A stretch of 62,000 bases of DNA. Source: Octopus vulgaris. Lineage: Eukaryota. Numbering within the stretch: position 1 is the first letter of the stretch; each line of letters opens with the position of its first letter. The notes beneath the pieces were generated by a model, which worked only from the letters and a program-made list of their open reading frames with translations, did not search any database and had not been told where the DNA came from. The translations under genes and the position numbers were made by a program. Below, piece by piece: positions 60 to 30,830 of this stretch. The stretch spans positions 117,820,001-117,882,000 of the forward strand of contig OX597817.1 in assembly GCA_951406725.2 (NCBI GenBank). Direction: 5' to 3'.

Positions 60-230
60 CCCTTCTTCCTAGCTCTCCTATTCAACTAGCATTTTCCAAC
101 CAGTAGTTATGATTGACCTCTAAATCGACAAGTTTGTTTCTATTCTCTTTTTGTTCCTTTCTCCTCATGTTCCTTTCTGTTGAAGAGCGTTGGCTCGAAA
201 TGTAAAAGACTTTCTCAATTCCAGAGCTTA
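60..230 (+). mobile_element. Short PLE pseudo-LTR-like fragment carrying a hammerhead-like motif, followed by (TA)n
   Basis: Pyrimidine-rich tract, then the HHR-like motif at 173-208, then (TA)n at ~229-248. Same layout as the PLE 3' ends elsewhere in the window. Confidence 0.5.
173..208 (+). ncRNA. Minimal type-I hammerhead-like motif, A6U core variant
   Basis: CTTT-CTGTTGA-A-GAGC(gttg)GCTC-GAA-ATGT-A-AAAG: 4-bp stem I, 4-bp stem II, quasi-palindromic mini stem III. Core reads CUGUUGA instead of CUGANGA. Confidence 0.55.
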
Positions 231-1739
231 TATATATATATATATATAACTTTTTATAAAACTGTGCATCATTAGAAAGCATTTTAAGTCTGCTTATAAT
301 TTGACTTTAAATTTCATAGAACTCACTCCTAATACTTCATGAGGATAGTCAAACTCGCTAGGATGTCTGGAAAACATATATGTGATTTCGCTGATGACTA
401 CTGGACATTTGTATTTGCTGCAATATTTGCAGCTTTAAATAAAATTGTTCTTAGTATGAAACAATTGTACTAAACTACTAATCCATTCTTGTTGCTTTTT
501 TCTTGGTTATATACATATATGAATATATATGTGTGTGTGTGTGTGTGTGTGTGTGTGTGTGTGTGTGTGAATATGTATGTACATGTACATGTATATGTAA
601 ATATACATGTATCTATGTATGTATGTTTCGCTACATGAAGCTGCTTACTTAACAATTGTTATTTTCTCATTCATATAAAAATGTATAATTTGGCCCTGTA
701 ATTACCTTAAGATCATATAAGAACGCTGTGCGGTGTACTACTGGAGGTTAGAAATAGTGCTCATTAATAAGTACAAATATATTTACTTTTAACAACTGGT
801 CCTTGGATATGCCCTGGTAATGCAAATCGTTACGTGTATGCATTACATATGTGTTTGTGAGTGGGTGTGTATATATACTAAATTCAAATTTAAATTCCAC
901 TTGCTATAAATAGAGCCATCATTCCAAAACCAATAATACCCACTATTAAAACTCACTATGCACTGAACATAACATAACACTATGCACTGAACATAACAGA
1001 AGCAGGCTTACATTGAGTGGAATACAGAAGTAAGGAATGTGTATATCTCAGGATGAATTGATTGCACTTCTTATATGAAAATTCATACTCTGAGCTCATC
1101 AGCTGAAAATAACACTTTAACATCTATTTCTGAACTATTTGTCACATTACGTCGTGTACCTTCTTTAATTTTAAATGTCACCGCGACATTTAAAAAAAAC
1201 TTATCGTTTGCCAGTATAAATTTAAATTAAGTTTTGTTGTCTGTTTCGGTTATATTCATTGCATTGGCCGTGTATATTTTAATAGTGAGTATTGGTGGTT
1301 TCAGATCGATGAGCAAGTTTATAACAAGTGGTATTTAAGTACCCTATGGAATTTGAATTTAGTTTATATTTTACCTGTCAATGTGTAAACTTGCAAGACA
1401 CTATATTATTATTATTATTATTATTATTATTATTATTATTATTATTATTATTATTATTATTATTATTATTATTATTATTAACGATCATAATAATACTAAT
1501 TTAATTTGTATATATATATGTATATATATATATATATATATATATATATATATATATATATATATATATATATATAGAGAGAGAGAGAGAGAGAGAGAGA
1601 GAGATCAATAAATGGTGGGGTTGTGTTGACCGCACGTGGAGAAATGATAAGCAAGGAAAAATTGCAAAAATGCAGAATGCTCGATTGAAAGAAAAATTTT
1701 ATGAAATGAGAAAATGAAAAAATATATAAATATATATTT

Positions 1740-1779
1740 ATTCAAACCGGTTTTCGTCATAGTTTGACTTATCAAGAAT
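1740..1779 (-). ncRNA. Minimal type-I hammerhead ribozyme, U3-A8 variant, in PLE copy 1 3' UTR
   Basis: Minus strand ATTC-TTGATAA-GTCA(aacta)TGAC-GAA-AACCGGTT-T-GAAT: 4-bp stem I, 4-bp stem II, palindromic 8-nt stem III. Confidence 0.8.
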
Positions 1780-2454
1780 GAAAAGGTTTTTTAAAAATGA
1801 GAAAGGGGAAAAAAGTTGCATTGTTTTTTGCAAAAGAATAATAATAAATATGTATAAAAATTTTAAAATAAGTACTCCGATACATTGTGAGTTGGTTGTG
1901 TATCTTGAGTTTAATGAATGTTCACGAAAAAATTACCTTGAGGTATTAGGATCCAATGGGATTAAGGCCATGTGTTGTTTGGTTTAATTTAGGATGTTGG
2001 CAAAACAGGAAGTAGTAGTAATTGTGGTTCTTCAGTTCCTGTGTTGTGAATAAGGGGAGACAACTCTTTTGGGTTCTTCAATAAAGGCTGCTGATAAAAT
2101 CCCAAATTATAGAATTGACATTTTAGCTTCATTTGCATTATCTTTTTTATGTAATTGTTTGTTAATTTAACTTTCAGATTTTAACACTTTGTTTATATTA
2201 TTTTCTAATTATATAAATTTGCATAGACAATTGCATTTCAGATTGTTATATCATAAATAATAAAGATGATGGTAATAACAACAATAGTAAAAATGATATT
2301 TAAAGAATATAAGTTTTTGCTGGAAGTGATGAATCTATGGTATCCTTATATATTTGTGTGAGTCCATCCATGAAGAATGAGGTAGAAAAGGGAAGTTTGA
2401 TCAACGAGTAGTTTGTATATTAAGTTCTGTTTGGAATTTTTCAATAAAGATATT

Positions 2455-3468
2455 CTACTTGTTAATTCTCTCCTGTGTGGTGATGCCGTCTTTACATTGG
2501 TAGAAGGGGAATATATAGAATTTGGGGTTTAAGTCTTTAGCGCATGAGTCTATGTGGTCACTCAGTGGAATTTGTCGGTATTCCGGGAGATTTATTTGTT
2601 CTTTATGCACCGCTACCCGTTTACGTAACGGGAGACTCGTTTGTCCAACATAATTATGTTGGCAACCAGCGCATGTGAGAACGTAGATAAGGTTCTCGGA
2701 GGAACAGGAGAAATTAGTCTTGATTTTAAACTTCGTACCTTGTTTGAAGGTAAATTCAGAACTTTCAAGTAGGAGAGGGTATGTCCCACAGTTTGGGCGT
2801 GCACATTTTTTTACTGCTGGGGGTGGATGTGGTGTGTGAAGTTTGGCATTTGTCAAGATTTTTTTTAAAGATTTGTATTGCCTTTTACATTTGAGGATTT
2901 TGTGTGTATTTATAATGTTTTTCATTTTTGGGTCTGTTGACAGTAGACTGAGGTTTTGTATGATTGTGGGGTATGCTTCGATATTTTTGGGGTTGTGGGT
3001 GGAAATGTATGGAAGTATTTTGAGGTTGTGTATGGTGTTAGGTTGGGTAGTTTTCGGTGTAATGTTATCCAGTTCTTTGGCGCGTTTTATTCCATACTCT
3101 ATAACGGTGGAGGGATATTGGCGTTGTAATAGTGTTTTTTTGAGGTCTTGAAGGCGTATTTCTCGTGTATTTGGATCCAAGACGATGGTACATACCCTTT
3201 TAGCCAAATTGAAAGGGATATTTGTCTTGGTGTGTTTTGGGTGGCATGAACTAAAGAGGAGGTATTGTTGTGAGTCTGTGGGTTTGTGGTAGATGTCTGT
3301 TATGATTTGGTTCTTAGGTGCTTTTATAATTAGGAGATCAAGGAATGGTAGATGATGTTTGCTTAATTCCATAGTGAATTGGATGTTGGGATGTATGTTG
3401 TTTAGTAAGGTTTTGAATTCCAGGAGTTTTTCATAAGGTTCTTTCCATATGATGAAACAATAATCCAA
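2455..3468 (-). pseudogene. PLE RT C-terminal half + thumb + GIY-YIG endonuclease (337 aa open frame)
   Basis: IQFTME, LPFLDLLI, TDIYHKPTDSQQYL (PLE RT 6/7/thumb); CARPNCGT Cys motif; LIYVLTCAGCQHNYVGQT (GIY-YIG with CxxC); VH...DH completing CCHH. Catalytic YLDD is mutated to YLDY just upstream and there is a premature TAA near the C-terminus. Confidence 0.9.
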
Positions 3469-3614
3469 ATACCTTTTCCAGTTTTCCTTTATGTAGGTGT
3501 GGAAAACATGTCCAAATTTCTGGCGTGATATTTCATAGAGTATATATAGAGTATATATATATATATATATATATATATATATATATATATATATATATAT
3601 ATATATATATATAT

Positions 3615-3673
3615 TCTTTTACTCCTTATTCCTTTTTGCAGTCATTTGACTGCGGCTATCCTGGTGCACCACC
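3615..3673 (-). mobile_element. 3' tail fragment of SINE family 1
   Basis: Matches the cagtcatttgactgcggc end of the full copies at 11535 and 21580. Confidence 0.6.
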
Positions 3674-29394: not shown

Positions 29395-29560
29395 TTCACG
29401 GTCTCGTGCAGCTGTTTGAACATCTAGATACCTGTGCAAATGGGAAATTTAAAATATTAAAATTTTACAAAAATGAAAACTATAAAAAGTTCCAACTACG
29501 AAAGATAAAAGAAGAATACTTTATAAGAATTCTAAATTCGAAATTAAACACGAAATATCT
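29395..29560 (+). mobile_element. PLE GIY-YIG C-terminal remnant (different family)
   Basis: LFEHLDTCANGKFKILKFYK...LRKIKEEYFIRILNSKLN parallels LSDHIDSCAKD...FPFYQ...RIKKENLFIEKFKTHLN of the large PLE. Confidence 0.75.
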
Positions 29561-29599
29561 AATACTGCATTTTATTACCAAATTCGTAATATGCACTTG

Positions 29600-29830
29600 A
29601 AAAGATGCATCACTGCAATTCCTCCCGAGCCAGTGTACCCTATTTGTATGTCGTTCAGTTTTAAGTGCTGGTAGCACAGTACTTGGAATTTTCCTGCATT
29701 AAACTGCATGTTGTTGTACTCAGCCCTCTTGTATATTGCCTCCAAATCCCGTTGCAGATGTTCAATATTTCCAGGATTTTGTATTTTCTGAGACTTTTGT
29801 GTCATCTGCATACCGATTTATATTGTTAAT
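29600..29830 (-). mobile_element. CR1/L2-type LINE RT fragment
   Basis: Minus strand YADDTK, then (frameshift) LQRDLEAIYKRAEYNNMQFNAGKFQVL. Confidence 0.8.
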
Positions 29831-29849
29831 AGATAATAATATCAAATAT

Positions 29850-30070
29850 TCTCCGTACAGAATGCTTGTAAAAATCCCTAGGTTGGATTGGGTTAATCTT
29901 TCTAGACGTACCTAAGAATTGCTTATCCATGAATGTTATCTATAAGTAGTGCTCAACCGAATAAATGGTATATTGTTCATAGATGAGGTTCAAATATTCA
30001 CCGTATAGAATACACTTCGTAGCGCTCAAGACAGTATAGTTTGTATATTGACCTGCCTAAATTGCTTATC
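29850..30070 (-). mobile_element. Very decayed LINE (RTE-like) C-terminal fragment
   Basis: Stop-interrupted translation resembling KLYC...LRY..V.RL....ILYGE of RTE ORF ends. Confidence 0.35.
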
Positions 30071-30479
30071 CTTACATTTACCTCTATATGTGTGTGTGTG
30101 TATGTGTGTTTTCGGGTGCGTGTGAGAAACTTGTTATATGACATTTTCCTATCACAAATAAACAAGCAAAATACATCATTCCTTTAGTATTATACTGTAT
30201 AACAGTCTGTAGACTGCCGCCATGTTGCAAGTCTTCTGCGAAAGTCGCTGTTGATCACATCGACATTTGCTAACTTTCAGTCTAGTTCTATCGGGGTTTT
30301 TTCTATCGAAGCACTGAGTTGCGGGAACATGAATAGAAAAAATATCACCTGGTAACAGTAGAAGACAAACTCATAAATGTAACCGTCTTGCACAGGAACA
30401 CACATGTAAATGCATATATTCACACATATGTATGTATGCCATTGTTCAGTTTTATTTCAAGACATTTTTGCCAATAGAG

Positions 30480-30830
30480 AAACAGCCGGTTTCTAACCTC
30501 GATTCAAGGCACCTTCAACGGAATTTCAACATCAACAACAGGGTGTACGTAAGTGAGCTACACAATCAGACAGAAATACACGATACTACGCACAGGTTTA
30601 CATTTACTTATTAAACTTGCTTCCTTCTGACCCACTTGAAATCACTCCAGCTTACGTTCAATTTCAAACTACATAAACAAATTTCCTTTTTGTCTCCTCT
30701 CCTTAACAGGCTTTCCTTTTTGATAGTCTGACGATGAGACTTGTCCCGAAATATCACTCACTGTCCGTACAACACACTTCATTTTCTCTCAATATTGATA
30801 AATATATTTTGTTGTGATTAAAATTTACGT
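30480..30830 (+). mobile_element. PLE-like 3' end/pseudo-LTR fragment
   Basis: Pyrimidine tract followed by a canonical-core HHR, ending before (CA)n. Confidence 0.5.
30725..30758 (+). ncRNA. Minimal type-I hammerhead ribozyme, canonical core
   Basis: AGT-CTGACGA-T-GaGAC(tt)GTCcC-GAA-ATAT-C-ACT: canonical CUGACGA, extra U after A9, palindromic ATAT stem III, AUC triplet; one A.C mismatch in stem II. Confidence 0.7.

Follow-up and report, generated by a model that had tools for sequence, protein, structure and literature searches.

Minimal type-I hammerhead ribozymes (HHRs) are a known component of the pseudo-LTRs (pseudo-long terminal repeats) of Penelope-like elements (PLEs). Here, we analysed HHR-like motifs, and the PLE copies that lie among them, in a 62,000-nt stretch of Octopus vulgaris DNA (assembly GCA_951406725.2, contig OX597817.1, positions 117,820,001 to 117,882,000 of the forward strand); this whole stretch is called the window, and coordinates are counted from its first nucleotide. 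Minimal HHRs in PLE pseudo-LTRs were reportedly also a subject of Lunse, Weinberg and Breaker in 2017 (cited in PMC6765202). The motifs described by Cervera and de la Pena in 2014 (PMC4209133) include a U3-A8 variant in Schistosoma PLEs, a base inserted between positions 9 and 10.1 and pairing of G10.1 with C11.1. Their 15.2-16.2 positions are palindromic, and most of them are solitary motifs from truncated PLEs (PMC4209133). The insertions of PLEs are characterised by (TA)n targets, inverted 5'-truncated copies and tails of 30-40 bp (PMC8557442). Natural variants of the hammerhead core comprise the U3-A8 covariation, a U4C substitution with reduced activity in a viroid, and changes of A6 that lower activity (Perreault et al. 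2011, PMC3088659).

The HHR motifs of the window represent this already described feature of PLEs and not a new kind of ribozyme. We consider it highly probable that the region is a nest of dead, (TA)n-lodged, endonuclease-positive PLE insertions and 5'-truncated 3' ends that carry minimal type-I HHRs. In common with the published PLE motifs, those of the window have type-I topology, a helix I of 4-5 bp and a helix III that is absent or consists of a 2-6-nt palindrome, implying dimeric action. The optional extra base between A9 and 10.1, the G10.1-C11.1 pair, the U3-A8 pair and the 3' location in elements with reverse transcriptase (RT) and GIY-YIG endonuclease are likewise shared. In both cases the motifs are mostly solitary and derived from truncated elements, and sometimes they form opposite-strand pairs. 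The window differs in the host lineage, in the 8-nt palindrome AACCGGUU that forms helix III in two coding copies (A and B), in a 4-bp helix III hairpin of the motif at 6507, and in the U4C or A6U substitutions of two relics. As far as Neptune/Nematis PLEs, which have a CX2-5CxxC linker, are summarised in PMC8557442 (after Arkhipova 2006), they resemble the window in RT, CX4CxxC linker, GIY-YIG domain, (TA)n insertion, 5'-truncated and inverted head-to-head copies and terminal tails of ~30 nt. In contrast to them, the window holds no full-length copy or pseudo-LTR pair, and the likeness comes from linker and structure, not from phylogeny. Animal non-LTR retrozymes (de la Pena 2020, PMC7229834; Li et al. 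2026 preprint) are also small, non-coding type-I HHR units for which an origin from PLEs has been proposed; they are tandem repeats that give circular RNAs, whereas the window is without tandem units. Unlike the variants collected by Perreault et al. (PMC3088659), those of the window sit in retrotransposon relics, and their activity is putative.

Self-comparison of the window, which is AT-rich (GC ~28-39%), dense with microsatellites and eukaryotic in character, revealed an inverted repeat of 2.1 kb (1509-3541 versus 19155-17036, 86% identical) that corresponds to two PLE copies. Copy A (1606-3544, minus strand) is 5'-truncated and comprises part of the RT, the thumb, the linker, the GIY-YIG open reading frame (ORF) and the 3' region, with (TA)n at both ends. 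Its ORF (2455-3468) is intact and codes for 337 amino acids with the thumb, a CX4CxxC linker and GIY-YIG; the Pfam GIY-YIG match was 17.9 bits, which is under the Pfam cut-off of 22.6 bits. Copy B (~16416-19055, plus strand), also with (TA)n at both ends, is 5'-truncated inside the RT and consists of an RT ORF (16623-17762), an endonuclease region and an HHR-bearing 3' region. The RT ORF matched Pfam RVT_1 with an E-value of 4e-7, and the tblastn match to PLE proteins spans 16509-18169. Translated, the endonuclease region contains CARPNCGTC as its linker and a GIY-YIG-like core, and two stops interrupt its reading frame; the 3' part contains a short internal (TA)7 followed by a terminal segment of ~140 nt. 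The RT is followed by a C-terminal GIY-YIG endonuclease in one ORF, which in copy B has the stops, as is characteristic of endonuclease-positive PLEs, and the linker, as judged from the translations, is of the Neptune/Nematis type. The ORFs of the window have 33 PLE homologues (best E-value 1e-136) with the Pfam domains PF00078, PF01541 and PF26215, and the nearest named ones come from Argonauta hians (52-55% protein identity). Copies A and B have unlike 5' truncation points and unlike flanks, and each adjoins (TA)n at both ends; the differing truncations and flanks indicate that they are independent insertions. A C-terminal fragment of a further PLE endonuclease ORF was found at 29406-29549 on the plus strand (tblastn E-value 3.5e-7). 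The original prediction, made from the letters of the stretch, had proposed that HHR-bearing PLEs insert into (TA)n in this genome, and the two RT/GIY-YIG copies and the endonuclease fragment bear this out.

A motif of ~28 nt, TAGATAAATGTGAC[A/C]GC[G/A]TGTGTACCGT, was observed at the start of copy B (16420-16449, plus strand) and at the start of a short element with a U4C motif (16305-16334, minus strand), which stands head-to-head with copy B over (TA)n. An inverted sequence related to this motif ends copy A (1606-1645) and copy B (19015-19055). By analogy, the motif probably matches the 'tail' of 30-40 bp known at the ends of PLE insertions.

The search for HHRs was based on three covariance models (R1, R2 and R3) that were constructed from the HHRs of relatives only and contained no window sequence. 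Loci of PLE relatives were obtained by protein alignment of the PLE C-terminal half (72 metagenomic loci) and by exact protein look-ups (nine more); one Argonauta locus (L001) was interrupted and uninformative. R1 was seeded with four canonical HHRs from distant PLE relatives. When applied to 77 PLE-relative loci, it found 36 HHRs, and 33 of them were located on the protein-coding strand. R2 was built on 31 HHRs of PLE relatives, and R3 on three relatives' HHRs having the extra base after A9. HHRs of the latter kind were misaligned by MAFFT, so model-guided alignments were used. The three helices of the relatives' HHRs covary, with 94.9% of cells paired versus 63.6% after shuffling, double changes in 10 of 12 pairs and no equal result in 500 shuffles, in an alignment that was model-fitted and so favoured the structure. 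The window was then searched with R2 with the filters off (124 kb in all). The top four matches reached 27.3, 27.3, 26.1 and 22.3 bits, and the runner-up anywhere in the 124 kb had 12.4 bits.

Two of these four matches are the HHRs of copies A and B, which lie in the 3' region of the PLE, on its sense strand and ~680 nt beyond the ORF, the same position as in the relatives. The HHR of copy A (1740-1779, minus strand) reads auuc-UUGAUAA-guca-AACUA-ugac-GAAA-accggu-UU-gaau. It has the core UUGAUAA with a U3-A8 pair, the helix II GUCA/UGAC, and GAAA followed by the palindrome AACCGGUU, and cleavage is predicted after U17. Its scores were 22.3 bits (E-value 6.9e-4, as 1739-1780 of the minus strand) with R2 and 13.5 bits with R1. 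The HHR of copy B (18858-18899, plus strand) reads aattc-UUGAAAA-guca-CAUUA-ugac-GAAA-accggu-UU-gaauu, with helix I AAUUC/GAAUU, the core UUGAAAA, helix II GUCA-CAUUA-UGAC, GAAA and the same palindrome. The predicted cleavage falls between 18894 and 18895. It reached 26.1 bits (E-value 5.8e-5) with R2 and 19.2 bits with R1, which is the best R1 match. In both motifs helix I has 4-5 bp and helix II has 4 bp. While the whole copies are 14% diverged, the only changes between their 40-nt HHRs affect N7 and two positions of loop II. Both copies carry U3-A8 and the differences within the motif are confined to N7 and loop II; hence U3-A8, as read from the two copies, represents the A/B family consensus rather than decay. 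The closest relatives (48-53% amino acid identity: L080, L081, L079 of Argonauta, L002 and L004) have CUGAUGA...GAAA-CCGG/CUAG-U at the corresponding place. Since they keep C3-G8, the U3-A8 pair of A/B is a derived covariation. A U3-A8 pair was also present in another sample, at position 2181 of locus L003. In this locus the PLE ORFs are preceded by the U3-A8 HHR (2181-2220) and followed by a canonical one with another helix I (4659-4692), which suggests that two PLE subfamilies abut there.

The other two top R2 matches belong to a perfect palindrome of ~140 nt (6436-6578) that adjoins (TA)n and consists of two head-to-head HHR units, each with a tail of ~20 nt. The unit at 6507-6555 (plus strand) and its mirror copy at 6460-6508 (minus strand) both read gcuuc-CUGAAGA-u-uuc-UCUU-gaa-u-GAAA-cag-UACUAGUC-cug-UA-gaagc, and both scored 27.3 bits (E-value 2.6e-5), the window's top value. 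They are type-I HHRs with the canonical core CUGAAGA, helix I GCUUC/GAAGC, helix II U-UUC-UCUU-GAA-U and a 4-bp helix III closed by an 8-nt loop with ACUAGU; in the plus-strand unit the UA cleavage site is predicted at 6549-6550. The minimum free energy structure of the isolated 6507 motif is the three-way HHR fold with a true hairpin of 4 bp as helix III; the helix II of this motif is similar to that of close relatives. The whole palindrome as RNA is predicted to form a single hairpin (-110 kcal/mol), and Rfam gave only generic sub-threshold hairpin or miRNA matches on it. The reading of 6459/6506 as a mere palindrome was dropped because R2 ranked both units top. The arrangement fits the inverted 5'-truncated layout described for PLEs (PMC8557442). 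Such a palindrome could be a source of hairpin small RNAs against PLE 3' ends.

The remaining candidates have lower support. The motif at 173-208 (plus strand, 21 nt from (TA)10) reads cuuu-CUGUUGA-A-gagc-GUUG-gcuc-GAAA-ug-UA-aaag and is an HHR-like relic with an A6U core; two substitutions, A6U and UG as the insert in place of UA or CG, separate it from a perfect minimal HHR. It scored 17.2 bits (E-value 0.03) with R3 as 172-209, the best R3 match in the window, and 11.0 bits with R2. The second-ranked R3 match (16223-16259; 14.1 bits, E-value 0.2, above a noise floor of 10.5 bits; 9.9 bits with R2) is the U4C motif at 16224-16258 on the minus strand, guuu-CCGACGA-A-gag-CUCCA-cuc-GAAA-cg-UU-aaac. 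This motif has the additional base following A9, the pair G10.1-C11.1 and the palindrome ACGU, and as a minimal HHR of the extra-base kind it is perfect but for U4C. It lies in a retroelement 3' end of ~210 nt (16126-16334, minus strand) between two (TA)n tracts, which has a paralogue at 6193-6368. The short element is non-coding and ~180-210 nt long, and its two copies have a common 3' terminus (...GGATTAACT beside (TA)n) and different 5' ends. One fixed 3' end with variable 5' ends is expected where retrotransposition truncates copies from the 5' side. The tail of ~28 nt at the start of the 16-kb copy and the 5' tail of PLE copy B have almost the same sequence. In the paralogue, the motif (6289-6323, minus strand) is decayed, with U4C and G8U, mismatches in helices I and II and a non-palindromic ACCU. 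The presence of C at position 4 in both copies indicates that the source element already had U4C; no covariation was found in this family, as the changes break pairs. The last candidate (30725-30758, plus strand) is weak. It begins with agu-CUGACGA-U, after which come a helix II in which one pair is an A-C mismatch, GAAA, the palindrome AUAU, UC and acu; helix I has 3 bp. The PLE endonuclease fragment lies 1.2 kb upstream of this candidate, on the same strand. The candidate had no match with R1, R2 or R3 and is supported by the descriptors only.

Two sequence descriptors complemented the covariance models. Descriptor 1 followed the published layout of minimal HHRs (PMC4209133), with helix I, a CUGANGA core, an optional extra base, helix II, GAAA, a palindromic insert and UH. 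It replaced an initial strict descriptor (no bulge, no mismatch) that missed 30725, 173, 16224 and the U10.1-U11.1 type of the relatives. With a canonical or U3-A8 core and a palindromic helix III, it matched 30725 (plus), 18858 (plus) and 1779-1740 (minus), which is 3 observed versus ~0.09 expected from dinucleotide shuffles, and the reversed window gave 0. In descriptor 2, the extra base after A9 and G10.1-C11.1 were mandatory and at most one core substitution was allowed. It matched 173, 30725 and 16258-16224 (minus), that is 3 observed versus 0.007 expected (300 shuffles), again with 0 in the reversed window. A loose descriptor with one core substitution allowed found 5 matches in the window versus 2 in the reversed window, from which it follows that core relaxation by itself is uninformative. 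The core CUGANGA...GAA, with U3-A8 allowed, is present at 18858, 1740, 6507, 6460 and 30725, and absent at 173, 16224 and 6289. Helices I and II on the core, A15.1-U16.1, H17 and a short or palindromic helix III were seen in the descriptor and covariance-model alignments. In viral contigs, the A/B and U4C motifs had no matches.

The original prediction had listed HHRs at twelve coordinates. All twelve quoted strings are present there, and as ribozyme motifs four of them are strong (1740, 18858, 6460 and 6507), three are moderate relics (173, 16224 and 6289) and one is weak (30725), while four are unsupported. The motif at 6001 has U4C plus C at 16.1, and helix III is absent. The motif at 10237 (minus strand) has A6U and two U-U mismatches in helix II, and the one at 10292 has no helix I. 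At 19266 there are 5 nt between the core and GAAA, which leaves no room for helix II, and the E-values with R1 and R2 were ~0.4-0.5; this motif lies inside a 242-bp element resembling a miniature inverted-repeat transposable element (19184-19425; 28-nt terminal inverted repeats, 86% complementary), directly after the (TA)n that closes copy B. The claim that the motifs adjoin (TA)n holds for six of the seven credible ones, at a distance of up to 164 nt, where 25-36% of the first 31 kb is equally close to a (TA)n tract with n of at least 5. Short palindromic forms of helix III, also part of that prediction, were confirmed in several motifs. The contexts are indeed multiple and unrelated at the nucleotide level, though the credible motifs fall into five of them, not six.

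Several observations weigh against our interpretation of the region as a nest of HHR-bearing PLE insertions. The link of 173, the palindrome, 16224/6289 and 30725 to PLEs consists of motif type, orientation, (TA)n, the 16224 tail and the endonuclease fragment near 30725, without continuous homology to a coding PLE. Accordingly, when the 3' region of copy B was compared with the other HHR contexts at the nucleotide level, only (TA)n matched. The thresholds of the descriptors were fixed only once the candidates were known. In the whole window, Rfam reported no hammerhead at the gathering score; at E-values up to 10 there was also none in 31001-62000, nor in small sub-windows at 18858/19266 and 6440-6575. 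In vitro cleavage by the published minimal HHRs of PLEs is poor, and this includes their dimers (PMC4209133). A pseudo-LTR pair, direct terminal repeat or tandem PLE arrangement was not found in the window, where both coding copies are 5'-truncated. In the case of Rfam, Hammerhead_1 gave 26.7-27.3 bits on the best canonical minimal HHRs of the PLE relatives (including L040, 5841-5884, and L043, 4324-4366) versus a gathering score of 34. Genuine HHRs of relatives fall below the cut-off, and the Rfam negative consequently has little power for minimal HHRs of PLEs. The missing pseudo-LTRs reflect the state of copies A and B and are not evidence against the PLE family.

According to the proposed mechanism, each PLE would carry a minimal type-I HHR on the sense strand near its 3' end, as in pseudo-LTRs. 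In an active element, this HHR would be transcribed within a tandem or partly tandem PLE RNA, in which two HHRs would pair via the palindromic helix III (AACCGGUU in the A/B family) and form two active sites. Each active site would cut after position 17, and the transcript would be trimmed to unit length; in the A/B family, an isosteric U3-A8 pair replaces C3-G8. Dimeric cleavage and a processing role at this locus would correspond to what the literature describes for such motifs (PMC4209133, PMC6765202, PMC8557442). A dimer of the A/B HHRs joined by the intermolecular palindromic helix III is predicted thermodynamically. The copies of the window are truncated, solitary, located on both strands and partly mutated (U4C, A6U, G8U, broken stems), and they are best read as relics and not as working ribozymes. 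It had also been suggested that a transcript crossing the region could be cut at several sites. This is unlikely, since the motifs are solitary, of different families, on both strands and partly mutated, and since minimal HHRs require a partner of the same type, while the sole monomer-competent motif (6507) is locked in the ~140-nt palindrome.

Three other explanations were weighed against that of dead PLE insertions. It appears to us very improbable that all motifs are hits which a permissive pattern yields by chance in DNA rich in AT and repeats. Chance does describe the behaviour of 6001, 10237, 10292 and 19266, which had no covariance-model match or an E-value of at least 0.4, and it agrees with the reversed-window matches of the one-substitution descriptor and with the lack of a hammerhead in Rfam. 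However, it does not account for 1740, 18858, 6460 and 6507, which stand at least 10 bits above noise with R2, or for 173 and 16224, which occupy ranks 1 and 2 in the separate model R3. Furthermore, the shuffles expect 0.007-0.09 matches where 3 were observed, and, within PLE copies, motifs occupy the sense strand at the place known from the relatives. According to a second explanation, the short units (16224/6289, 173 and 6436-6578) are non-autonomous, retrozyme-like elements that replicate via circular RNA and are not truncated PLE 3' ends. They are non-coding and without nucleotide similarity to the coding copies A and B, animal non-LTR retrozymes have been proposed to derive from PLE pseudo-LTRs (bioRxiv 10.64898/2026.07.22.740005; PMC7229834), and the ~28-nt 5' tail common to the 16224 element and copy B suggests the same mobilising machinery. 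Nevertheless, self-comparison and the covariance models revealed no tandem HHR-to-HHR units of the same family in the 62 kb. The fixed 3' and variable 5' ends of 16224/6289 are the signature of 5' truncation in target-primed reverse transcription, and the palindrome has the inverted 5'-truncated layout of PLEs (PMC8557442). We regard the retrozyme-like origin, which the original prediction had proposed alongside PLEs, as unlikely.

The third explanation concerns the cores. If the U4C and A6U variants were a selected, catalytically competent family consensus, they would widen the natural repertoire of HHR cores; we find this decidedly doubtful. The U4C core occurs in two independent insertions (16224 and 6289) with different 5' ends and so was present in the source element. 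The 16224 copy keeps all stems, G10.1-C11.1 and the ACGU palindrome, with all six in-motif differences being disruptive in the 6289 copy, and a viroid hammerhead with U4C is active enough in vivo for infectivity (PMC3088659). On the other hand, the U4C family has only two copies, and pairwise alignment showed that its HHR segment is no more conserved than the flanks (6 differences in 35 nt versus ~10%). A6U was found once only, at 173, together with a non-palindromic UG insert, as 10237 is not a credible HHR; changes of A6 lead to low activity (PMC3088659). The relatives' loci, 288 kb in all, contain 16 canonical HHRs by descriptor and ~50 HHRs by covariance model; a search there for U4C or A6U cores whose stems are intact gave none. 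L064 (A6G), the sole clear single-substitution variant in the relatives, represents the L009 type in decayed form. Moreover, PLE clades free of HHRs proliferate well (PMC8557442), which means that an impaired or dead HHR need not stop a source element from spreading. The two copies, in which no constraint is visible, fit a U4C consensus as well as a U4C relic, and relic status explains the U4C and A6U cores more simply. We give only a slim chance to the idea that the 16224/6289 lineage fixed its U4C core and still cleaves as a dimer. The earlier expectation that recurrent core variants are family consensus was upheld for U3-A8 in A/B; U4C is common to two insertions, and A6U is a singleton. 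The case for an extended catalytic repertoire is weak, as U3-A8 is known in nature and U4C in a viroid.

Other features of the window were noted in the course of the analysis. At 54669-54711 (minus strand), beyond the range of the original prediction, a canonical core CUGACGA...GAAA is combined with a helix I of 5 bp and a poor helix II; the R2 score of this motif (9.2 bits, E-value 4) is at noise level. A repeat of ~450 bp is present three times, dispersed or in tandem (11533-11981, 12142-12561 and 21592-21977; 72-79% identity), and no hammerhead signal was found in it. Local tandem duplications were seen at 37687-38048 and 38208-38570 (87%) and at 27041-27210 and 27212-27382 (80%). Related minisatellite-like arrays occupy 20109-20208, 26741-26819 and 52514-52713, and their many offset self-matches point to a short period.

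The results have a practical consequence for annotation. Genomes rich in PLEs need dedicated HHR models, as standard Rfam annotation misses the minimal class. If activity of the U4C lineage were true, the U4C and U3-A8 families would show that minimal dimeric HHRs tolerate core changes that monomeric ones do not. The A and B copies provide a concrete case of an independent covariation from C3-G8 to U3-A8 between closely related PLE families. With them, a cephalopod PLE lineage with a minimal HHR of the U3-A8, AACCGGUU type is added to a class that has been described since 2014.

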